Positions 1,154 to 63,048 of a stretch of 64,000 nucleotides of DNA are shown here, one piece after another (position 1 is the first letter of the stretch; every line of letters starts with the position of its first letter). This stretch comes from Octopus sinensis (taxonomy: Eukaryota), in assembly GCF_006345805.1 (NCBI RefSeq), contig NW_021834231.1, positions 1 through 64,000 on the forward strand, in the 5' to 3' direction. The notes beneath the pieces were generated by a model that did not search any database, was not told the origin of the DNA, and was given only the letters and a program-made list of their open reading frames with translations. A program made the translations under genes and the position numbers.

Positions 1154-1688
1154 TGTTTCTTTATTAGCCACACAGGGCTGCACACAGATAGAACAAATTA
1201 CAAGGTAGAGCTTTTCTTTTGAAGGTATTAAAAAAAAAAAAAAAAAGGAAGGGGGGGGAGGTTCGATCAAAAGGGATCGTAAAAGGAGAGAGAGAGGACA
1301 AAAAAAAAAAGGGGGGTAAAAAAAAAAAAAAAAAAAAAGGGGAGAGGAAAAAAAAAAAAAAAAAAAAAAAAAATGATCAATAGGGATCGTTATCACAGAA
1401 ATGTCAATATGAAGTGTAAAGGGGAGGACAGGTGAGGTTTACCCGTGGAAAGAAAAGCCTACGGAAAAGACCACGGTAACCTCGGTCAATGAAGTCACAT
1501 TTTATATTCTTTTTTTTTTTTTTTTTTTTTTTTTTGCAAATAAGAACTCTCTGTTTTCGATTTTCTGGGTTCATAGGACTATGCTCAAGGTGGCTTCGTC
1601 ATTCATACGTGCCATTCTTGCTACATTCACCCATCTTTTTTTAAAACATTCGCTAGACAAAACTTGCCTCTCTACTCTCACTTTCTTT

Positions 1689-7252: not shown

Positions 7253-7253
<1 letters not shown>

Positions 7254-7296
<43 letters not shown>
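7254..7296. repeat. (GATA)n, 5' flank of the Tx1 element
   Basis: Direct reading. Confidence 0.95.
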
Positions 7297-8000
7297 TATG
7301 GACCACTCAGCGTTAATCTGGACGGCAAAGATAAAGATAAATATTCAAATGATATTGCTGTATTAAGGACTAGTAACAATTAAAAATCTTCTCTCAATGG
7401 TTTTGGTGTTCGGCAAAAGAGAGCAATATTCTACAGACTATTTCGCAGTTTTATGACCATCTCAAGAAAGACTAGTCTGATATCGTTCGCCAATCGATAG
7501 CATAGAATATTACGCTGCTATATATAAGATCATTTTTACTATTCTGGTTTGTGAGAGCAGCCGAGTTTATTTCAGATATTCTCATTTTAAAACTTATCTG
7601 TGGCTAATCATTGGGAGGGCGTTGGTGTTGCCTTGGCGGATGTTTGCGCGCTCTGAGTGGTCTTGTTTTATATGTATTGCATTATGACCGAATTATCCAA
7701 TCGGGAATTGGTTAGATTGCCATAAAAATGCATGCAATAGTACTTATATGCTTATTTATCATCAATTATTGATATTTCGAATTTTCGAATGCATTTAATA
7801 TGCACGTTTCAAGTGTTTGCATAAGAATTTCTTGTCAGAAATATATTCCCGCTAGTTAGCCATTACAAGCAAAATACGTTGGTAGTTTCTGTGTGTGCAT
7901 CTGTATGTGTTCGTGTGTGTGTGCATGCATACACATGCATATATATATATATATATTATATATATGTATGCATGTGTATGCACACACACACACACACACG

Positions 8001-8079: not shown

Positions 8080-8480
8080 TCTTTTACTCTTTTCAGTCAT
8101 TTGACTGCGGCCATGCTGGAGCACCGCCTTTAGTCGAGCAACTCGACCCCGGAACTTATTATTTTGTAAGCTCAGTACTTATTCTATTGGTCTCTTTCGC
8201 CGAAACGCTAAGTAACGGGGACATAAACACGCCAGCATCGGTTGTCAAGCAATGCTAGGGTGACAAACACAGACACACAAACACACACACGCATATATAT
8301 ATATATATACATATATACGACGGGCTTCTTCCAGTTTCTGTCTACCAAATCCACTCACAAGGCTTTGGTCGCCCTGAGGCTATAGTAGAAGATACTTGCC
8401 CAAGGTGCCACGCAGTGGGACTGAACCCGGAACCATGTAGTTGGTAAACAAGCTACTTACCACACAGCCACTACTGCGCC
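8078..8480 (-). mobile_element. SINE family A, full length (tRNA-like head, internal CA/TA microsatellite)
   Basis: Head GGCGCAG.AGTGGCTGTGTGGTAAGTAGC...GGTTCAGTCCC with A/B-box-like motifs; shared 3' end. Confidence 0.85.
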
Positions 8481-11670: not shown

Positions 11671-12250
11671 ACTCTCTTTTACTTGTTTCAGTCATTTGAC
11701 TGCGGCCATGCTGGAGCACCGCCTTTAGTCGAGCAAATTGACCCCAGGACTTATTCTTTGTAGGCCTAGTACTTATTGTATCGGTCTCTTTTGCCGAACC
11801 GCTAAGTTACGGGGACTCAACACACCACCATCGGTTGTCAAGAGATGTTGGGGAAACAAACAAAGACACATAAACACATACACACACATACATATATATA
11901 TATATACATACATACAACAGGCTTCTTTCAGTTTTCGTCAGCCAAATCCACTCACAAGTCTTTGGTCAGCCCGAGGCTATAGTAGAAGACACTTGCCCGA
12001 GGTGCCACGCAGTGGGAATGAACCCGGAACCATGTGGTTAGTAAGCAAGCTACTTACCTATTTCTTTACTACCCACAAGGGGCTAAACACAGAAGGGACA
12101 AACAAGGACAGACAAACGGATTAAGTCGATTATATCGACCCCAGTACGTAACTGATACTTAATTTATCGACCCTGAAAGGATGAAAGGCAAAGTCGACCT
12201 CGGCAGAATTTGAACTCAGAAGCTACTTACCACACAGCCACTCCTATGCC
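11671..12250 (-). mobile_element. SINE family A interrupted in its head by a SINE-B insertion
   Basis: Family A body 11671-12058 and head remnant 12221-12250. Confidence 0.85.
12059..12220 (-). mobile_element. 5'-truncated SINE-B (Tx1-type tail) with 11-bp target-site duplication
   Basis: AGCTACTTACC at 12048-12058 and 12221-12231 flanks the insert. Confidence 0.88.
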
Positions 12251-12423: not shown

Positions 12424-12870
12424 AAGTCGGCGAGGTGGCAGAATTGTTGGCAGGCCGAAAAAAAATGCTTAGCGGCATTTCGTCTGTCACTATGTTCAGA
12501 GTTCAAATTACGCAGAGGTTCACTTTGCTTTTCAACACTCTCAATGTTGATAACATAAGTACCAATAGAAGACTGGGGTCGATGTAATCGACTTACCCCT
12601 TCACCTGAAATTGCTGGCATTATGCCAAAGTTTGACACCAATATCATAAATAAAAGAAGGCGACGAGATGTCAGAAGGGTTAGTACAACGAGCAAAATGC
12701 GTAGCGGTATTTCGTCCGTGTTTACATTCTGAGTTCAAATTCAGAAGAAGTCGACTTTGCCTCTCATTCTTTTAAATAAAATAAGTACCAGTTGTGTACT
12801 GGATTGGATGTATCCAACTTAACCCCGCCCAAGTAATTGCTGGCTGCGTGCCAAAATTTAAATCCAACAT
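12424..12870 (+). mobile_element. Two diverged SINE-B copies with the alternative (non-Tx1) tail
   Basis: GGCGAG.TGGCAGAA heads, GAGTTCAAATT B-box-like motif, tails ...AATTGCTGGC..TGCCAAA.TTT. Confidence 0.75.
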
Positions 12871-14869
12871 TCTTAAACAAAAGCTAAAAGATTAAGAAAC
12901 AAACAACCGACAGCTGAAAACTTTAGCCAGCAATTGATTTTCAGCAGACGTCGAGTAACTATATTTGTGAGTCGGTCATTTATGTGCGTCAACATTTTCC
13001 CACTTCATATTTGGTAGAAATATAAACAAACTGAAAATAACAGCCTTCGTGTCTTCCACAATGGTTAAAACTTCTCTTCAAAATATAATTTAATATATAT
13101 TCATTCTGTCTCGTCAATTACTCTCGTGAACTGTGATAAAATAGAAATTGTGACTAGTAACTGAATACTTTTAGTTTTACAATATTTCTTTTCGCATTAT
13201 CATGTATTGAGTAACTTATTTACATGTTGGCAAATTCAAACATCTATATATATATATACATACAATACACACACCTATACAGATAGAATCATGTATACAC
13301 ATATACATATATTGTGGAAAATGAAGGAGTGTTGCTTTTTATGTGCGTGATTTCTGTGAGGAAATGCTTGAGTCACGCAGGCTTGGTCAGCCATCAGAGA
13401 ACTCATAATTAGTGCACAAAATGCACTTTTTAATCGTCAGTGCAAGCATAATCAAGACATACAAATAAACAAAAAAATAAACATACCAGATGAACACCAC
13501 ATGTATCCAGCATAGTACATAGAATTGTTCACCATTATATGTCTATGTAAGAGGCGGGCTTTTCGAATTGCATCTCGGTACACGTGTTTATTCAGAATAA
13601 AATTCAGCACTGAATATATTCCGGTTAAATTTACAATTCATAAATAGGATAAAATCTTTATAAGAATTTTTCAAGTAGTTAGCGTGAAAAACCTCATAAG
13701 GGAAAAAATCATGAAATCATAGGATTTGCAGCTGAATCTATTTTTAAAAGGCTCGCTTCGAGAGTTGCAGTCCCTCGCGTTCGGTACAATATGTTTATTA
13801 TGGTAGTTTTGACTTTAAGAGTCCCTCCTAGCATGAGGCATTGATGTATAGTAATGCCCTGAGCAAATAAACATAAAGATGGTGTAAAGTAAAGCCACAC
13901 AAATATGGTACACACTTCCACGTGCTTTATGCGTTAGATTCAGGAAACAGGATCCCTCTCTCTTTTTTAGAACTAAATTTGGAAAGAGCCAGGGATTTCC
14001 CCCACGGTGAAATACTGAACGGTACCAGCAACATGGATTTAATATTTCGAAAAAGAAAAACGAGAATATATCCATCGCTCAATCTAGGCTTATTAACAAA
14101 TATTTTCTCGAACCCTTTTTCACCGTTTTATTCTGTAACATAATTCTAAATATCATACTGAACCTAATATTATTGATAAAGGGAATCCAATGCACGTTTT
14201 ACTAAATGTAATTCATATGAAAAAAAACTATCAATAATAATAATAATAGTAATAATAATAATAAATCCATTGTTTTTCGAAATATAAAGAATTCAAGACC
14301 GTTAGATGCATACAGACGCCCATTGACATCAATAATTATATTTGCAGCGTGATACATATCATCAACTATATTTCGTTACAGAATAGAGAAATAAATTACA
14401 TTTTTTCGAAGAATCAGTCTTTTTTCTGTTTTCTACATTTTTCTTTCGTTTCATGTTTAAGTTTGATTTCACGAACACTACAAAAGCAAAACGTTGTCTT
14501 CCTGTCTAAGTTAAGACGTGATCTAGGAATAATGACTCCAGGAGATTTCATGATTCAGATGCACGTTTTCCTTTCATCAGAAAATATAATAAAGTTTTGT
14601 CTAGTTTTCACAATATCAAAGCTGCTGTTATTCTACTTTTTCGTTAATTTTTATAGTGAGGAATATATTTCTTTCATACATGACTGTCAAGCAAATTAGA
14701 TAAACAAGAAATAAAGATTTTGCAGCAAGATATAGGATCGCATGGATTTTTTTCAAAAAAATGTATTGGAAAAGGCACTCATGACAAGTGTTCATGACAT
14801 TTTACATAAATACACACACAGACTGATATGTGCGCCCACATGCACATATGCATATACTTAAATATATAT

Positions 14870-18628: not shown

Positions 18629-19890
18629 TTAAGAGCTGTATAATGCGGAATTGTAATAGAGTTCGACAAAATAGTTTGCGGTATTTGTTCAGATTCCTAG
18701 CACGCCAAGTTCAGATCCTAGCGTGGTTGTCTTTGTTAAGTTTGAGGTCGATATATAAGTGAGAAAGCCCTTTCTCACAGTTTGCAGGGTTTTGCCTCAG
18801 TTAGAATCAATTATTATTGCGATTACTAGTTTCCCTAATTACACGCCGTATGGTTGCTGTGTGTGAAATTAGAACGACAGACATTGTTAAAAGGGTTTGT
18901 TTCTACGTTCAAAGGGTTGTCTCATTGTGAAATAGTACACAATAAAACTGAAACCGTGTTGCAAATTTTGATGAAGTAATTTGATATAGGGATGTATAAT
19001 TATCTCTCTGTATAAAGCTGAAGTTGCCTGTGTATGGCAGGTTTGGTAGCCTTCAACTAACACTATCTCCACCGAGACCCTGCGGTGCAAGTTGACCAAA
19101 ATTGACAGTATGATAGAAGAAGGCTTGCTCCTCCTTCCGTAGAAGAAACAATTCAAATCGGACCATGTTAACACCAAAATTTATTTACATCAAAAAGGTG
19201 CTTTTTTTCTATGAAAATCCCTATTTTTTACGATATTTTTACTGCTGTGTCGCCATCTTTCTGTGTATTTCAACCAGAAAAATGTTCACTTAAAGAGAAT
19301 AACAAGCTACATAATGCAAAACTTTTACTTTTCAAAAGTTCCAATTCTAAAGGGTCGATACAAGTCCGAGCAACGCCGGGCGATACTGCTAGTAGATGAC
19401 ATCTTTGCTTTATTCTCGACGTTATTCCTTAATCGTTGCTTTTCTTAGAAATGAATAGAAAGAATTTTACAGCTTAGTAACTTAGTAACAGACAAGAAGT
19501 AGTCTCTATATTTTTCGTATCATATAGTTGTAGATTATATGAAAATAATAACATTATTCTTTATTTTGAACAAAACTGATTTCGTCTAATATACATTAGT
19601 AAAACCTACAACTTTTTTCCTGTCCAGTTATATTAATTCGTAGACGATTGTTTATCAAAATAAAAATAAAAATATAGAATTGTATATTATTCTTATTTTG
19701 CTTCATTAAGTGTATTACAATATCTATGTTGCAAAAAATAACCTCTTCTACATAGGCGTTCACCATAATTTGCATTATGTCTATCGATCAGTTATTTGTT
19801 AAAATTTTTTAGTTGTGTGTAATATGAAAGAAAATATGTTAATTTGTCCGCTGCTGTATCTGTTTTGGCTTAACTTTTAATGGTTTCAAA

Positions 19891-20452
19891 GGCGGCGAGC
19901 TGGCAGAAACGTTAACACGCTGGGCGAAATGCGTAGCCGTATTTCTTCTGCCGTTACGTTCTGAGTTCAAATTCCGCCGAGGTCGACTTTGCCTTTAATC
20001 CTTTCGGGGTCGATAAATTAAGTACCAGTTACGCACTGGGGTCGATGTAATCGACTTAATCCGTTTGTCTGTCCTTGTTCGTCCTCTCTGTGTTTAGCCC
20101 CTTGTGGGTAGTAAAGAAATAGGTATTTCGTCTGCCGCTACCTCCTGAGTTCAAATTCCGCCGAGGTCGACTTTGCCTTTCATCCTTTCGGGGTCGATTA
20201 AATAAGTACCAGTTACGCACTGGGGTCGATGTAATCGACTTAATCCGTTTGTCTGTCCTTGTTTGTCCTCTCTGTGTTTAGCCCCTTGTGGGTAGTAAAG
20301 AAATAGGTATTTCTTCTGCCACTACCTTCTGAGTTCAAATTCCGCCGAGGTCGACTTTGCCTTTCATCCTTTCGGTGTCGATTAAATAAGTACCAGTTAC
20401 GCACTGGGATCGATCCAATCGACTTAATCCCTTTGTCTGCCCTTGTTTGTCT
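19891..20452 (+). mobile_element. SINE-B head-to-tail array (3 units, 184-bp period)
   Basis: Tail AAAGAAATA joined to internal GGTATTTC at 20122 and 20306. Confidence 0.88.
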
Positions 20453-20479
20453 TCGGGATTCATTTTTATATATGTCCCA

Positions 20480-27102: not shown

Positions 27103-28052
27103 GCGGCGAGCTGGCAGAAACGTTAGCACGCCGGGCGAAATGCTTAGCGGTATTTCGTCTGCCGCTACGTTCTGAGTTCAAATTCCGCCGAGGTCGACTT
27201 TTATCCTTACGGGATCGATAAATTAAGTACTAGTTACGCACTGGGGTCGATGTAATCGACTTAATCAGTTTGTCTGTCCTTGTTTGTCCTCTCTGTGTTT
27301 AGTCCCTTGTGGGTAGTAAAGAAATAGGTCTTTCGTCTGCCGCTACGTTCTGAGTTCGAATTCCGCCGAGGTTGACTTTGCCTTTCATCCTTTCGATAAA
27401 TTAAGTACCAGTTACGCACTGGGGTCGATATAATCGTCTTAATCCATTTGTCTGTCCTTGTTTGTCCTCTCTGTGTTTAGCCCCTTGTGGGTGGTAAAGA
27501 AATAGGTATTTCGTCTGCCGTTACGTTCTGAGTTCAAATTCCGCCGAGGTCGACTTTGCTTTTCATCCTTTCCGGGTCGAAAATTAAGTAACAGTTACAC
27601 ACTGGGGTTTATGTAATCCACTTAATCCCTTTGTCTGTCTTTGTTTGTCCCCTGTATGTTTAGCCCCTTGTGGGTAGTAAAGAAATAGGTATTTCGTCTG
27701 TCTTTACGTTCTGAGTTCGAATTCCGCCGAGGTCGACTTGCCTTTCATCCTTTCGATAAATTAAGTACCAGTTACGCACTGAGGTCGATATAATCGACTT
27801 AATCCGTTTGTCTGTCCTTGTTTGTCCTCTCTGTGTATAGCTCCTCGTGGGTAGTAAAGAATTAGGCATTTCGTCTCTCTTTACGTTCTGAGTTCTCTAC
27901 ATTTTGAGTTCAAATTCCGCCGAGGTCGACTTTGCCTTTGATTCTCCCGAGGTCTATAAAATAAGTACCAGTTGAGCACTGGGGTTGATGTAATCGACTT
28001 ACCCCCACCCCCCAAAATCATAGACTTTGAGCCAAAGTTTGAAACCAATATT
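27103..28052 (+). mobile_element. SINE-B array: one head, four Tx1-tailed units, last unit with the alternative tail
   Basis: Unit starts at 27149, 27327, 27505, 27688 and 27865, each of the last four following AAAGAA(A/T)TA. Confidence 0.88.
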
Positions 28053-28618
28053 TCTTAGTTATCAGACGACAATTGTTAACGCACAGAATGTTTAGTACCG
28101 TTTCTTCCGAATTTGTGTTCTGTGTTGCCGGGATCGTCTTTGCTATCTATGCTTTCGAAGTGGATAAAATAAGGGCCAGTAAGGACGATGTAATCAACTT
28201 AACCCTTTCCAAAATTTGCTGACCTTATGACAAAATTTGAAACTATTACAACCCAAATATGCTGCAATAGTTTTAGTTCCATCACTCGATACAGAACAAA
28301 TTGTTTGTCAGACTAGCGTAAATTTATGAAGATATATATTCTGATTCTTGGCTTATAATTAATATATAGATAGCATGTTTATCTTTCCATTTTTCCATAA
28401 GTAAATGATCTTGGCAGTCTTTATAGAAACCACCTAATAAGTAATTAAGTAAGTACATGAATGAATATTAATGATTCTATGTAATCTTTCCTTTTTAACG
28501 TTGAAAATTGATATACATACACATTTTACCTATTTTGGTTATGATATCATTTTTGATAATCTTAAATTTTATCTTTATGTAACATAAGAATATCGTATAT
28601 AAACAATCACCTATAGTA

Positions 28619-42425: not shown

Positions 42426-42491
42426 TGCCAGTAGGCCATACATTATACGCTTTTCTACTCGAGGCACAAGGCCTGAAAGTTTTGGAGAGGT

Positions 42492-42665
42492 GGGTGCAGT
42501 CGATTAGATCGACTCCAGTACGCGACTTGTGCTTAATTTATCGAACCCGAAAGGATTAAAGGCAAAGTCGACCTCGGTTGAACTTGAACTTAGAATGTAA
42601 AGACAGACAAAATACCGGTAAGCATTTCGCCCAGCGTGCTAACGTTTCTGCCAGCTCACCGACTT
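42492..42665 (-). mobile_element. SINE-B, head and core only
   Basis: GGTGAGCTGGCAGAAACGTTAGCACG...GGTCGACTTTGCCTTTAATCC. Confidence 0.75.
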
Positions 42666-44334: not shown

Positions 44335-45615
44335 AGGAGAAAGTAACCTTTAGAAACTCCCCTCTCATGGAAGTTGAACACTTTTAGAAATATATTTGGA
44401 GTGATGAAAAGACTTAAAATGAAAATTTAGACTGGATTATACGCACAGAAGGATCCGACCGAAACGTGCCATAGCAAGCATGGGAAACATACCTAAGGAT
44501 GACACTTACGGAAGCTCATAAGTAGAAATTCCCTGGTAATGATAGGGTGCCAAGTTTCTGGCTCGCATCGCTCCCCTGCGCCCACGGAAAGTTAGTCCAT
44601 TTATTCAATGAAATTATGAGAGATTCTAGGAAAACACCTGATTGGTTAGAAAGAGGTACTACTTATCTACTCCCGAAGAATAATGAAACCAAATCTCCAC
44701 AAAACTATTGGCCCATAACATTTACCACGTATAAAATTTTAACGTCCATCCTCGTAGAGAAAAAATACAAATTTATGGTACAGAACGATATTTTCCCCAC
44801 TGAACAAAAGGGGTGCCGACGAAGCTCATATGGATGCAAAGACCGATTCTTAATCAATCGCATGAGCCTTGAGACGTATCATAACAATCACAGAAATCTC
44901 AGTTCTGCTTGGATTGATTATAAAAAGGCCTTCGACAGCATTACCACATTCATGGATCTTGAAATCGTTAGATAGTCAGAATTTCTCCGGTGATTTCAAA
45001 CTTCCTTAAGTACATGTCAGTGTGGAATACGAATCTCCAATTATGCCACCTTAATGGAGTACTGATCACAAAAATCAATAATATCAACTGCGGCATTTTC
45101 CAAGATGACACACTTTTGATTTTTTGTATAGCCCTAATACCATTTACAAGTGAACTTAACAGAACAGGGTATAGATATAGAATAGGCGACGAGAAAACAA
45201 ATCATATGTTTTATATGGATGAGGTAAAATGTTATGGCAAAGACTATAATGAGCTTGAAGGACTACTACATACTGTGAAAGCATTCAGTGATGACATTGA
45301 GATGGAATTTGGTCTTGATAAATGTATCAAGGCTTCTTTCCAAAAAGGGAAACTAAAGACCTCACATTCAGTGGTGTTGGATGTTGACGCAGGCATAAAA
45401 GAACTCGGGCAGGAGGAAACTTACAAATACCTCGGAATAAAGGAGAGCTCTGGCCTTCAGTATGCAAGTATGAAAGAGAAGATCAAGAAGCAGTGTTGCT
45501 GGAGAGTTCAAGCAATCCTAAAATCCGAGTTAAATGCACGTAACAAGGTGTTAGCTATAAATTCCTTAGCAGTTCCGGTTGTTATTTACAGTTTCAATGG
45601 GTTGAACTGGAATAT
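44335..45615 (+). pseudogene. R4/Dong-like reverse transcriptase remnant
   Basis: PDWL.RGTTYLLPK, NYWPIT, EQKGCRR..YGCKD, AWIDYKKAFDS, GIFQDD, HMFYMDEVK, MEFGLDKC, YKYLGI, NKVLAINSLAVPV. Confidence 0.85.
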
Positions 45616-45944
45616 CAGCAAAATATTCCAGTTCTTTATCTCCCCATTATTTTCTGTGATTACATTTTTTCATTTTCCTTTTTTTTCCTTTTTCTCTCTG
45701 TCTTTCTTCCTCTTTTTCTCTGTCTTTCTTCCTCTTTTTCTCTGTTACATGACTTTGTAAATGAACAATCTAGTGTGCTTAGCGCTTATTTTAATGGCTT
45801 GCCAATGTATACAGTGCGTTTCTCTGCCCTATGTGTCAAGAAGACACTCGGCGAAAAAAGGAAACAGAATTGAAAGATGATAATGAAAATAATAATAATA
45901 ACAACAACAACAACAATAATAATAATAGCAACAAAACAAATCTA

Positions 45945-47634: not shown

Positions 47635-48332
47635 GTATGTATATGTATGTATATATACATTTATATTAACATATAAGTATTCGTAAACCATTCTTATGTT
47701 TATAAACATTTATATACGCATACATACGTGCACGCGTGCATGCGTGAATGGACTTTTGTTTTTGAAATGAACATAATTTCTCAACGCATAAAATACCGCA
47801 TGCCTATATCTGGCAGTAAACTCATAGTATCAGTTTGCACATCACGAAATAATACTTAAAGGATATAATCAAAATTACCAGCAGGGTATATACTATACTT
47901 CATATATTATATCTTACTTTAGTTAATACCTATATTTATTTAATATGAAGGAACTACACGCGTAGGATTGTTGTTATTGTAGTAGTGAGCCTTCCATTTC
48001 ATTCTATCTATAAATTTTTTAGCTGGTTAATTAGGTCCTGTATATATTATTTCCTGCTGGGAATAGATATATCCTTCAAAGATGAGTTCCACTCTATCAT
48101 CTCAACCCTACCTGAAAGATCCATTTCTGACACATATAAGAAGTCCAAGTGGTAGAACCAATTGTATGATTAATATAAATAATTTGGGAAGACAAATTTC
48201 CAAATTAATTAAGTGCAACATTTCAGAGTTATATGCATCTACATATCACACTTTGGGGTATTATTTATCGTATATTTTTATATATTTACAACTTTTATAG
48301 CCAATATAATGAAATAAAGTAGTTTACTTACC

Positions 48333-50570
48333 TGTCTCGTGGTTAGACGTATTTTTTGGCGGTGAGTCAAACGTTTTGTTGAGTGCTGGATAATTTTTCT
48401 GTTGGAATTATTTATTGTTGAACATTTTCGAACTGTTGAACATTGTTGAACTGTTAAACTTTGAAAATGCTTGTGCTTTTTCCCGGTGACGAGAGAAAGC
48501 AATTGTTTGTGTAAAGCCATTTTTGCAATCGTGAACTGTTGAGATATTGAACTTGTTAAAGCCGTTGTAGACTTTATTGTCGTACCTACCACCAGCGGGG
48601 GTGGGATTCGAACTGTTATCGTCATTAAGAGGAAAAAAAATTATAGGTTTCCCGTTTCTAGGGATAATCAATTTATTATTGTGTGAAAATTTTAATTTTA
48701 GCCGTCGTAGGTTATACTGTGGCACCCCGCCCCTAGCGGGGTGAGATTTGAACTGTTGTCCTCGTTGTGAGAGAAAAAAACATATTATAGGTTTCCTGGT
48801 TTTTTTTGGATACCGTATTTTTATTCTTGTGTGAAAAATTGAATATCGACCGTTGTAGGTTTTGTTGTTATGGCTCGCTCCCCAGCGGGGGTGGGATTTG
48901 AACTGTTGTCCTCGTTGAGAGGAAAAAAAAGTAAAAAATTATAGGTTTCCCGTTTTCTAGTATTAAATTGTGCATAAATTTATTTCGAACGAATACGTCG
49001 ATCGAAGTAATTTCTGATAAAAATTCACTGGAAGAGCCAGTTAAGAAATTTTCAACAGTTACCGCGGTGGCTACTGAAAACGTCGAACTACCAAAGGGAA
49101 AGCTCTCAGAGTTTTTTGAAGAAATAAAAGAAGATGCGGGTGATATAAAAATATCACCCTCACCTAGTGTTGAAAAATTGAAAAGAAGGACAGTTGACAT
49201 AGATCTGGTCTGGACGGGTGTTGTCAATGCTAGGAAGGGCGAAGGCGGTGCAAATGTTTATAGCGTCGGTTACCACCTACCGCCTGGCCGTGGTGCTTTG
49301 CCCCGATTTGTGACTGAACAAGTTGGAGAGAATCCTTTTCCGCTTTTTGAGGAAGGGAGGGAATCCACTCGTGAAGCGCTCTGTCTGCTGCCAGAAACCG
49401 CTAAAGGGTGGGCTAAGGATGCTCTGGCTGAGGATGCGAAAATTCGCGTTAACGTTGAGGCACATCTGGCTTTACCTGGATGGGGATCAGGTGTGGTCAC
49501 CGCACGTCCGGTTCAACCTTCCGCAATTAACGTCCTTAACGGACATTGGGAATTGCATCAAGCAGAGACCTTGGCTGCGGGACTGGCAATTGGAGTGCCG
49601 CCAGGCACTTCAGCTACTCTCTCGGGCGGGCAATGCCGCCAATAGGAGTTCTACTGCGGATTTCTATAGTGGGTTAGTGGAGTTTAAGTCCGAAGCCTCC
49701 TTGGTGGAGAACCTGGGCTACGATGAAAATCAGTTGATCAACCTGTTCTGGAGAACTTTCGTGCCGGGGTATCAGGACAATTATCAGAAATCCCTGGCTT
49801 TGCAGTGCTTCCGTGCGGCGTTACCTGTTCTTGATAAACTGTCAAGGCACGGAAGTGCCTCGCCGACATGTCCGAGGTGCGGGCGGGACAGAGAAACCGT
49901 CTTGCACGCATTTTTGGAATGTCCGGAATTAACGAGACTGATAGTTTTCACAGAGCAACTGTTGTCATCGATGGGAAGAGTACAGCTATCGGCTGAGTCT
50001 ATCATTGAGATTGTGCCGCCTCCTTCCCTTAACAGGGAAAGGAAGGCTTACTTTTTCTGCGTAGTGGCCATACTGTAAGAAACAGTATGAAAGACGCGTG
50101 TGAGAGGCATAGTGACGGCTACTTTTGTATCCGGCCAGGGGTTGGTTAACTATTTTAGTTAGCACCTGAGTAGTAAATCATGTTGGAGAAGACGTATCTG
50201 TCACGAGATAGATTCATGAAAAGATGGAAGCCTGTGGCGAGGAAGCTGGGAGCGATTGGCACCAGATAAGTGGAGTCCCCCCCCAAAAAAAAGAAAGGGA
50301 AAGAGAAGGCAAGGGTTCCATCCTGGTGGTCGGGTGCCTTTCCTTCAGCGAAGTCATTGCAAATCGCAATGAGTAACATGTTATCATGTAATTGGTAATT
50401 AGTAATTTGTAAATTGTAATTTGTAAATAGTAATTTGTGATTTTCAAATTGTATGATAAATTTATCATCACAAATTTTTAAACGTTATGGCAGCTACTAC
50501 ACCTTTTTATGTTTGCCTGTCCGTGTTCGTCCCGTCTCTGTAATGCCTTCATGGCAAATTTTATGAAATA
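48333..50570 (+). mobile_element. Internally deleted (bipartite) Tx1-like element: 5' UTR plus ORF1 start fused to ORF2 C-terminus plus 3' UTR
   Basis: ORF1-like start about 48994-49195 switches to IWSGRVLSMLGRA...LERILFRF...CPRCGRDRETVLHAFLEC, homologous to 1689-2660; flanked by 20/24 direct repeats at 48309-48332 and 50563-50586. Confidence 0.8.
48561..48962 (+). repeat. Three 140-149-bp tandem monomers in the 5' UTR
   Basis: Units start at 48561, 48701 and 48850; each has CAGCGGGG(G)TG(G/A)GATT(C/T)GAACTGTT and TTATAGGTTTCC. Confidence 0.88.
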
Positions 50571-50965
50571 AAGTAGCTTGCCTGCCAACCACACATACAG
50601 GTGCATTCCCACTGCGTGACACCTTGAACAAGTGTCTTCCACTGTAGCCTCGGGTCGACCAAAGCCTTGTGAGTGAATTTGGTAGAAGGTAACTGAAAAA
50701 ACCGTCGCATATATATGTGTGTGTGTGTATGCGTGAATGTGTGTGTGTATGTGTGTGTGTGTGTGTGTGTATGTTTGTCCTCTCACCATCACTTGACAAC
50801 CAATTTTGGTGTATTCACGTCCCCGTAAGCTAGCGGTTCCGCAAAGGAGGCCGATAGAATAAGTACTACGCTTACAAAGACTAAGTCATAGGGTCCATTT
50901 GTTCGACTTAACACGGTACTCCAGCATAGCCGCAGTCCAATGACTGAAATGAAAGAATGAAAGAA
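50571..50965 (+). mobile_element. SINE family A lacking its first ~22 nt, joined to the Tx1-like 3' end
   Basis: Starts AAGTAGCTTGCCTGCCAACCAC, then the normal family A body and tail. Confidence 0.82.
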
Positions 50966-50976
50966 AGAAAGATATA

Positions 50977-62711: not shown

Positions 62712-62939
62712 GGCGAGCTGGCAGAAACGTTAGCACGCCGGGCGAAATGCTCAGCAGTATTTCGTCTGTCGTTACGTTCTGGGTTCAAACACCGCCGAGG
62801 TCGACTTTGCCTTTCATCCTTTCGGGGTCGATAAATAAAGTACCAGTTATGCACTGGGGTCGATGTAGTTGACTTAATCCCTTTGTCTGTCTTTGTTTGT
62901 CCCTTCTATGTTTAGCCCCTTGTGAGCAATAAAGAAATA
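62712..62939 (+). mobile_element. SINE-B with Tx1-type tail, flanked by ATCT repeats
   Basis: ATCTATCTAT|GGCGAGCTGG...GAGCAATAAAGAAATA|TATCTATCTAT. Confidence 0.9.
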
Positions 62940-62940
62940 T

Positions 62941-62960
62941 ATCTATCTATCTATCTATCA

Positions 62961-63048
<88 letters not shown>
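62941..63048. repeat. (ATCT)n
   Basis: Direct reading. Confidence 0.95.

Follow-up and report, generated by a model that had tools for sequence, protein, structure and literature searches.

A hairpin-bearing 3' tail common to an octopus SINE and LINEs of the L1 superfamily

That short interspersed elements (SINEs) and their partner long interspersed elements (LINEs) have 3' tails in common is textbook knowledge. The tail described here lies in a 64,000-nucleotide stretch of Octopus sinensis DNA (NCBI RefSeq assembly GCF_006345805.1, contig NW_021834231.1, positions 1 to 64,000; the window), in which the end of a SINE, SINE-B, resembles the 3' ends of two LINE copies, LINE1 and LINE2. The last ~60 nt of SINE-B are probably the recognition tail of L1-superfamily LINEs, most likely of the Tx1 clade, in the same genome; because the same tail and hairpin end both, this LINE group most likely copies SINE-B. 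The model for a stringent pair of this kind is UnaL2 and UnaSINE1 of eel (Kajikawa and Okada 2002, via PMC4494074 and PMC4824008). As summarized in these two papers, the eel elements, like those of the octopus, have in common their last tens of nucleotides, a small conserved stem-loop and short terminal repeats, and the UnaL2 reverse transcriptase (RT) is thought to bind the stem-loop and to start within the repeats, as is proposed here. By the same accounts, the eel pair differs in belonging to the L2 clade and in being proven by a retrotransposition assay, whereas the octopus pair falls in the L1/Tx1 superfamily and is drawn from sequence comparison.

The preliminary description of this locus called a SINE/Tx1 pairing uncommon, and uncommon it is, yet there is a precedent in SINEU and Tx1-Mar of crocodilians (Kojima 2015, PMC4494074). 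There too a SINE is assigned to Tx1-clade LINEs with which it has insertion targets in common. Unlike the octopus element, SINEU has heads derived from small nuclear RNA and poly(A) ends, and its link to the LINE was drawn from target preference and 5' heads and not from the 3' tail (PMC4494074); SINE-B, in contrast, has a hairpin-bearing 3' tail in common with its LINE and microsatellite-like ends. No published Tx1/SINE link other than SINEU/Tx1-Mar was found in the literature. SINEs with L1 tails are rare as well, with only three found against more than 800 L1-clade LINE entries, in maize, sorghum and Chlamydomonas (Ohshima 2012, PMC3472496). The maize and sorghum SINEs paired with LINE1-1_ZM, and SINEX-3_CR paired with L1-1_CR, resemble the octopus case in their L1-superfamily 3' stem-loop with compensatory changes. 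These plant and algal pairs end in poly(A), whereas here the host is an animal, the LINE is Tx1-like and the ends are of the (TATC)n/(ATT)n type (PMC3472496).

Two further comparisons concern targets and tails. Kibi, Koshi and the crocodilian Tx1 families sit in (TC)n, (TTC)n, (TTCC)n or (TTTC)n and, like LINE1, have one microsatellite on both sides (Kojima and Fujiwara 2004, via PMC4494074). Their repeat unit is other than (TATC)n, and that secondary account reports no partner SINE for them. Unlike the target of Kibi and Koshi, the (TATC)n seen here may be the element's own terminal repeat and not a target defined by the endonuclease. MetaSINEs, CORE and Deu elements keep a central domain and swap tails as they change partner LINE (PMC4824008, PMC4758252), as the SINEs of the window appear to do. 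In mollusc tail-swapping SINEs the known partners are CR1 and L2, several SINEs having no named partner (PMC4824008), whereas both tail types described below pair with one L1/Tx1-like group. No paper naming the partner LINE of octopus SINEs was found in full-text searches of the literature; Repbase or Dfam entries may already note one.

The 3' tail of the LINEs and of SINE-B

The last 42 nt of LINE1 (reverse complement of 1156-1197) read TTTGTTCTATCTGTGTGCAGCCCTGTGTGGCTAATAAAGAAA and match the SINE-B tail at 20262-20303 at 34 of 42 positions without gaps. This is exactly the count of the preliminary description, whose second figure, 18 of 21 between the SINE tail at 20248-20268 and LINE2 at 50512-50532, is equally exact; local alignment extends the latter to 28/31 with one 2-nt gap. 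The tail of a LINE from Argonauta hians (locus L001) matches that of SINE-B at 47/53. Local alignment to SINE-B of the terminal 70 nt from LINE1, from LINE2 and from the Argonauta LINE gave scores of 24, 21 and 27, against a mean of ~8.5 (standard deviation 1.4) for dinucleotide shuffles, of which 0/2000 reached the observed values (z = 8-13; LINE1 z = 11.9). No match to the SINE-B tail occurred among 3412 control 70-mers from the rest of the window, whose best matches were all to a central SINE domain common to several SINE families. The match between LINE and SINE-B always sets 3' terminus against 3' terminus. Since blastn-short is too insensitive for diverged tails, it was replaced by an nhmmer profile (hidden Markov model, HMM) of the tail, which was applied to the whole of the available cephalopod DNA, ~110 kb. 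The profile matches the LINE1 tail with E = 5.6e-12, and in the window it has no matches beyond the LINE group and SINEs.

LINE lineages of at least three origins, namely the window, Argonauta hians and a Logan assembly (50-74% protein identity), have the tail as the close of their 3' untranslated region (UTR), and it is found at the extreme 3' end of LINE1, LINE2, four Argonauta LINE 3' ends and the Logan LINE. It is ~60 nt long and is built of a pyrimidine-rich stretch (UGUCUGUCC..UGUUUGUCC..CUCUGUGU), a GC hairpin, UAAUAAAGAAA and a short terminal repeat, which may be (UAUC)n/(UCUA)n, (AUU)n or UAGG. Among the closest proteins to the LINE1 C-terminus is a partial one from Argonauta hians (L001), and 366 nt past the stop codon of its open reading frame 2 (ORF2) the tail follows as ...TGTCTCTGTATCGTCCCCTCTATGTTTTTGCCCTTGTGGCTAATAAAAGAAAT, then (ATT)n. 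The profile adds three Argonauta LINE-type ends, all with an upstream UTR motif, CATGTAAACYCCCCATGT; the one at L005 16798-16856 ends GGCTAATAAAGAAACA(TATC)n, letter for letter as LINE1 does. A LINE relative in Logan assemblies (L050/L051, 57% protein identity) ends ...CCCGTCTTTGTTTAACCCTTGTGGTTTGAATAAA. The distance between tail and ORF2 stop is alike, ~370-420 nt, in LINE1, LINE2 and the Argonauta LINE. In addition, the LINE1 family has an independent copy in L003 (82% protein identity), which stays colinear with LINE1 along the 3' UTR up to the first tail bases, where its contig stops.

The Argonauta SINEs carry the same tail in many copies, on a 158-bp SINE whose head looks clearly tRNA-like and on a SINE-B-like one. 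The terminal repeats correspond in part: LINE1 and the SINE-B copy at 62712-62939 both end AAAGAAA(C/T)A(TATC)n, and the remaining SINE-B copies have UAGG there. In Argonauta, (TATC)n/(TCTA)n is seen at the LINE ends and AAATCTAT at the SINE ends. As judged from these alignments, the comparison shows the tail to be an integral, conserved 3' terminus of LINE lineages in at least two cephalopod genera, with SINEs of both genera carrying it.

A small hairpin before the A-rich end, noted in the preliminary description for all three window sequences, can be read directly in LINE1 (Table 1), in SINE-B (GCCC-CUUGU-GGGU) and in LINE2 (UGCC-UUCAU-GGCA). Every tail has a GC stem of 3-5 bp, ~12-15 nt from the end, and in most of them the loop is CUUGU. 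The stem bases change together, giving AGCC/GGCU in LINE1, UGCC/GGCA in LINE2, GACC/GGUC in Argonauta L001 780-847 and AACC/GGUU in the Logan LINE; the SINE stems are GGCC/GGCU (Argonauta SINE) and GCCC/GGGU (SINE-B). In an alignment of 12 sequences, in which LINE1 has a 6-nt loop and stands one column out of register, 91.7% of cells are paired, compared with 67.6% in shuffles (0/500), and 3/4 pairs are changed on both sides. With the partner displaced by 1-3 columns, pairing falls to 11-50%. The hairpin is present in the minimum free energy or centroid fold of 5/6 tails. This pattern of covariation shows, at the level of the alignment, a hairpin kept through compensatory stem changes.

A second tail type matches a different LINE lineage. 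It consists of a C-rich run, AAAA and a hairpin, GGC-CUUGU-GCC or UGGC-loop-GCCA; the stem that encloses CUUGU is here the reverse of that in the first type (AAGGC/GCCUU). A tail of this kind, on the SINE at 42440-42664 (minus strand), matches the 3' end of another LINE (L004 10083-10190) at 26/30, with a pair score of 20 against a shuffle mean of 8.7 (standard deviation 1.3). Because this SINE matches L004, the window holds one SINE body with alternative tails, each mirroring a LINE lineage of the same group. Three more SINE tails of the second type lie at 12590-12665, 12820-12895 and 27995-28065.

The LINE group

All reading frames of LINE1 are frameshifted, and both LINE copies of the window are dead. 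The domains of LINE1 are recognizable nonetheless, with Pfam E-values of 2.2e-16 for Exo_endo_phos, 7.8e-23 for RVT_1 and 2.9e-8 for zf-RVT, the last above the curated cut-off; its 3' UTR is ~420 nt long. The best solved relative of both the endonuclease (~3e-5) and the RT (3e-19) is human L1 ORF2p, R2 proteins being weaker, and the R1Bm and TRAS1 endonucleases are absent from the structural matches to the LINE1 endonuclease. With an APE-type endonuclease, an RT, a zf-RVT region and human L1 ORF2p as best solved relative, the LINE1 group is a member of the L1 superfamily (L1 and Tx1).

LINE2 is 50-56% identical in protein to its homologues P0001-P0003 (tblastn). L004 (ENA ERZ21867824), with 352 cluster members, represents a different lineage of the same group and has an intact ORF2 with APE and RT. 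The N-terminal domains of the LINE1 and L004 ORF1 proteins are homologous (E = 2e-4). The CCHC knuckle of ORF1 is weak in LINE1 (E = 0.05) and reaches 22-23 bits in L004 against a Pfam cut-off of 20.8; Transposase_22, the L1-type ORF1 domain, was not found with Pfam in either ORF1. An AlphaFold model of the ORF1 N-terminal domain, made with no alignment, has a pLDDT of 33, too poor for an RRM to be read from it. Neither word-indexed searches nor exhaustive HMMER nor cluster look-ups gave an informatively named or Tx1-labelled neighbour among the LINE1 homologues, which are unnamed or 'hypothetical' proteins apart from one misnamed RT fragment (P0100, below). L054, a relative at greater distance (33% identity), offers no tail for comparison, as its contig stops short of the 3' terminus, and no recognizable tail was found in another (L049).

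Several features of these LINEs and their relatives stand beside this account. The LINE1 3' UTR (1215-1480) has very long T and A runs at 1215-1375. Its inverted repeat, ACCCGTGG...CCACGGT (~1441-1478), and its repeats of the motif GATCCCTWTTGATC recur in L003. L004 1-14307 carries three successive LINE copies in a head-to-tail array, and in Patella caerulea (cluster of P0176) genes for 1153-aa ORF2 proteins bear near-consecutive locus tags on one contig. The Octopus sinensis protein P0100, a fragment of an RT with 58% identity to that of LINE1, is publicly named 'secreted RxLR effector protein 78-like' (NCBI), a name that is an annotation artefact on a retrotransposon fragment. A degraded reverse transcriptase that has no relation to LINE1 or LINE2 is spread over two ORFs at 44547-45760 (plus strand), where the RVT_1 match is weak (E = 4e-4).

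Table 1. Positions of the LINEs, SINEs, tails and microsatellites (window coordinates unless a locus is named)
Feature	Position	Strand	Description and basis
LINE1	7252-1156	minus	near full-length 6.1 kb, frameshifted L1/Tx1-type LINE; ORFs, Pfam, tblastn frame map
LINE1 ORF1	6327-5275	minus	CCHC knuckle in shifted frame at 5927-5541
LINE1 APE (endonuclease ORF)	4988-3516	minus	Pfam Exo_endo_phos
LINE1 RT	3711-2714, pieces over three frames	minus	Pfam RVT_1 and tblastn with homologues; narrower span 3427-2825
LINE1 zf-RVT C-terminal region	2584-1574	minus	Pfam zf-RVT and tblastn; narrower span 2375-1689
LINE1 3' tail	1156-1197	minus	last 42 nt of element; ends GGCTAATAAAGAAA, then CA(TATC)n
LINE1 tail hairpin	1166-1179	minus	AGCC-CUGUGU-GGCU; read directly, in centroid fold
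LINE2	~49209-50572	plus	5'-truncated copy, second lineage of same LINE group; zf-RVT C-terminal region and 3' UTR; Pfam, tblastn
LINE2 tail	50507-50572	plus	HMM E = 1.1e-8; z = 8.1 against shuffles
Argonauta hians tails	L001 7126-7188, 780-847; L005 16798-16856, 10761-10787		LINE 3' ends; tail profile
Compound (TATC)n array	650-1155	minus (GATA on plus)	~500 bp, directly 3' of LINE1 tail
(ATCT)n	7253-7300	minus	~12 units, directly 5' of LINE1
(TATC)n/(GATA)n arrays adjoining tails	650-1155, 62940-63047; L005 10790-10805, 16859-16914
SINE-B array	19890-20454	plus	one full SINE-B and two units starting at SINE position 50, 184-bp period; holds tail 20262-20303
SINE-B array	27103-28045	plus	one full SINE-B and three units from position 50, then older unit
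SINE-B, 5'-truncated (positions 70-235)	12056-12221	minus	inserted in SINE-A head, target-site duplication G(G)TAAGTAGCTT
SINE-B, full	62712-62939	plus	ATCTATCTAT on 5' side, (TATC)n 62940-63047 on 3' side
SINE with SINE-B head and body, different tail	42440-42664	minus	84-86% identity to SINE-B; tail ...CCTCTCCAAAACTTTCAGGCCTTGTGCCT
SINE-A 3' portion	50571-50975	plus	begins at AAGTAGCTTGCC, directly 3' of LINE2 tail

Insertion sites and SINE arrays

LINE1 lies inside the same microsatellite on both sides, as (ATCT)n adjoins its 5' end. The SINE-B copy at 62712-62939 has the same setting, between ATCTATCTAT and (TATC)26. Four of the seven independent (TATC)n arrays in the window and the Argonauta loci begin directly after a LINE or SINE tail, and the elements may seed or extend this (TATC)n/(GATA)n microsatellite. 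A different kind of site is found in the tRNA-like head of another SINE, SINE-A. The SINE-B copy at 12056-12221 and LINE2 both entered it in the same orientation and within 2-4 nt of each other, between GTGG and TAAGTAGCTT. Of the window's seven SINE-A heads, these two are interrupted there and five are intact, at 8444, 25189, 28636, 37035 and 53603. A short remnant at 48290-48335 (...TTTTATAGCCAATATAATGAAATAAAGTAGTTTACTTACC) repeats the junction of LINE2 tail and SINE-A, matching 50535-50585 at 31/40; it is either a third insertion at the SINE-A site or a local duplication.

SINE-B is present in the window as one 5'-truncated copy, one single full copy and two arrays, with 8 complete tails in all. 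Head-to-tail tandem repeats of its units extend over 19939-20451 (184 bp x 2.8) and 27149-27895 (178 bp x 4.2). At every array junction AAAGAAATAG is followed by GTATTTCGTCTGCC, the tail being joined to SINE position ~49 (GCGGTATTTCG), a site that resembles the one in SINE-A (GTGGTAAGTAG). In the array at 27103-28045 the position-50 units have 93-96% identity to the SINE-B body, compared with 85% for the last unit, which is older and ends in the other tail type (CCCC...AAAA...hairpin). Because of this older unit with its other tail, the array suggests that young SINE-B units entered a resident SINE repeatedly at a single site and that homology made the 5' joint. In Argonauta, L001 780-1355 holds a truncated LINE 3' end with (ATT)n, then three full units of the 158-bp tRNA-like SINE in tandem, each ending in the common tail ...GGCTAATAGAGAAATCTATT.

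The preliminary description attributed the SINE to a sequence-specific enzyme, and on this point strict specificity is unsupported. A strictly site-specific endonuclease was set aside on account of the varied flanks of the Argonauta SINEs. The simplest reading, drawn from few cases, is that the RNA pairs with the nicked target through its terminal repeat or 3' flank and homes in this way, for which a sequence-reading endonuclease would be unneeded. Pairing of the RNA end with a nicked target has been proposed for other LINEs with microsatellite-like ends.

The partnership and its alternatives

The core of the earlier proposal, that the SINE-B tail is homologous to a LINE 3' end and marks a SINE/LINE partnership, gains support from the cross-species LINE tails and the compensatory hairpin. 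In the mechanism proposed, the LINE ORF2 protein would bind the stem-loop on its own RNA, a stringent type of recognition as in eel UnaL2, and would start target-primed reverse transcription in the terminal repeats. RNA polymerase III transcripts of the SINE would present the same tail and be copied in trans. The RNA's terminal repeat or 3' flank would then pair with the nicked target and bias insertion to (TATC)n tracts and to sites that resemble the tail end (GYGGTAW); such a bias is proposed to be why LINE and SINE lie in the same microsatellite, why two insertions fall at one SINE-A site and why SINEs form head-to-tail arrays. SINE-B itself would, with the same good probability as the explanation of which it is part, be a non-autonomous retroposon with a tRNA-like head. 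We infer the partnership from the sequences compared here, and mobilization in trans is its prediction.

Several observations weigh against this account. No LINE copy with a tail at least 90% identical to SINE-B was found; the LINE1 tail is only 81% identical, and LINE2 diverges in the hairpin. With both copies dead as well, neither LINE of the window is the actual donor, whose lineage is unseen. Metagenome scans for more LINE 3' ends, by protein pattern and by an exact 25-mer of the SINE tail, found nothing, and 43 matches of a degenerate 17-mer in phage-like viral contigs were taken, uninspected, as chance matches of a short degenerate pattern. The hairpin is short, with a 4-bp stem, and has no unusual stability (z ~0 for most tails), and its 12-sequence alignment, in which both tail types are pooled, was set manually on the hairpin. 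By eye, the SINE-B head has a B-box-like GAGTTCAAATTCC and an A-box-like region, and ARAGORN and Rfam make no tRNA call: ARAGORN found no tRNA in the SINE head, and Rfam gave no match over the whole window at the gathering threshold or over the SINE region at E <= 1. The target preference rests on a handful of insertions, and Argonauta SINE copies end AAATCTAT, then run into varied AT-rich flanks. Finally, the clade label rests on elimination rather than on an RT tree with Tx1 and L1 references.

Three explanations dispense with the partnership as stated. The tail of the LINEs could be a 5'-truncated SINE-B fragment, inserted behind the LINE or transduced with it, and such a remnant abutting a LINE UTR is conceivable where SINE-B-type elements insert beside each other's 3' ends and form arrays. 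Recurrence of the tail on LINE 3' ends across species, and the colinearity of L003 with LINE1 into the tail, disfavour a fragment merely landing behind one LINE copy. The tail also stands at a similar distance from the ORF2 stop in the two LINEs of the window and in that of Argonauta. Variants specific to LINEs (GGCTAATAAAG) are common to the LINE tails, Argonauta LINEs share a LINE-specific upstream UTR motif, and LINE1 is 81% identical to SINE-B, compared with 88-100% for true SINE-B copies. This origin is very improbable. It is somewhat easier to imagine that the SINE is moved by another LINE clade, whose tail is the same or closer still, or that the LINEs captured their tail from an abundant SINE, given that no LINE tail at least 90% identical to SINE-B was seen in the ~110 kb of cephalopod DNA and that octopus has active RTE, CR1 and Dong LINEs in abundance (PMC13282606, PMC9115989). 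All tail-bearing LINE 3' ends found, however, belong to the APE-RT-zf-RVT group, the profile has no further matches in the window, and the second tail type, too, has its match in a LINE of this group. The tail's presence on LINE lineages with only 50-58% protein identity, across genera, fits an ancestral LINE feature, and the explanation by another clade or by capture seems improbable. Chance or composition has next to no claim on the data: the tail is a pyrimidine- and TG-rich sequence of low complexity ending in an A-rich run, and similar TGTTTGTCC strings occur inside SINE-A, yet chance similarity was rejected on the statistics, as no shuffle came near the observed scores and no genomic control matched the tail, and the match is positionally exact at both 3' termini and recurs across species.

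A further alternative leaves the partnership standing and alters only its label. The preliminary description named a Tx1 LINE; the L1-superfamily part of that claim stands by domains and solved relative, and the Tx1 part is reached by elimination. A mollusc LINE RT phylogeny includes Tx1, and no L1, among the clades that it gives by name, which are the 11/14 found in bivalves (PMC10294476), and octopus annotations list L1-Tx1 beside RTE, CR1, Dong-R4, Hero, R2, L2 and Penelope (PMC13282606, PMC8967140). Since these surveys list Tx1 or L1-Tx1 without L1 proper, and since an APE-RT-zf-RVT element with a CCHC ORF1 fits only L1-Tx1 among the octopus clades listed, the Tx1 label is probably right. 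That the LINE is L1 proper or another L1-like lineage, and 'Tx1' the wrong name, is unlikely but deserves some weight, as no nearest relative is named and the comparison was made without Tx1 references. Against it stand those surveys and the ORF1 with CCHC and without Transposase_22: Type-I-like RRM/CCHC ORF1s go with Tx1 in animals, and such L1-superfamily ORF1s are assigned to it (PMC5203782). Microsatellite embedding and head-to-tail LINE arrays are likewise Tx1 habits (PMC4494074).

With L1-superfamily LINEs, most likely Tx1, as the preferred source of the SINE-B tail, a broader reading can be offered as a tentative one, which falls somewhat short of being probable. An octopod radiation of Tx1-clade LINEs with stringent stem-loop recognition would drive the very large octopus SINE expansion, and SINE subfamilies would swap tails between Tx1 lineages. 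Through priming by tail or flank homology, LINE and SINE alike would home to their own terminal repeats, which would seed (TATC)n microsatellites and build head-to-tail arrays of both. Roughly a tenth of an octopus genome consists of SINEs. In O. vulgaris L1-Tx1 has been recently active, and 893/900 recently active SINE families are unclassified, without a named partner LINE (PMC13282606). If the broader reading were true, it would concern a mode of recognition, by stem-loop, otherwise almost unknown in the animal L1 superfamily. The hairpin, with its 4-bp stem and CUUGU loop, offers a concrete RNA element to mutate. The mechanism is an ordinary one, the LINE group is unusual, and the octopus host gives the case its relevance. 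Tying at least two SINE tail types to L1/Tx1-like LINEs would name the source of enzyme for part of the octopus SINE expansion and would add an animal example of stringent 3'-end recognition within the L1 superfamily.

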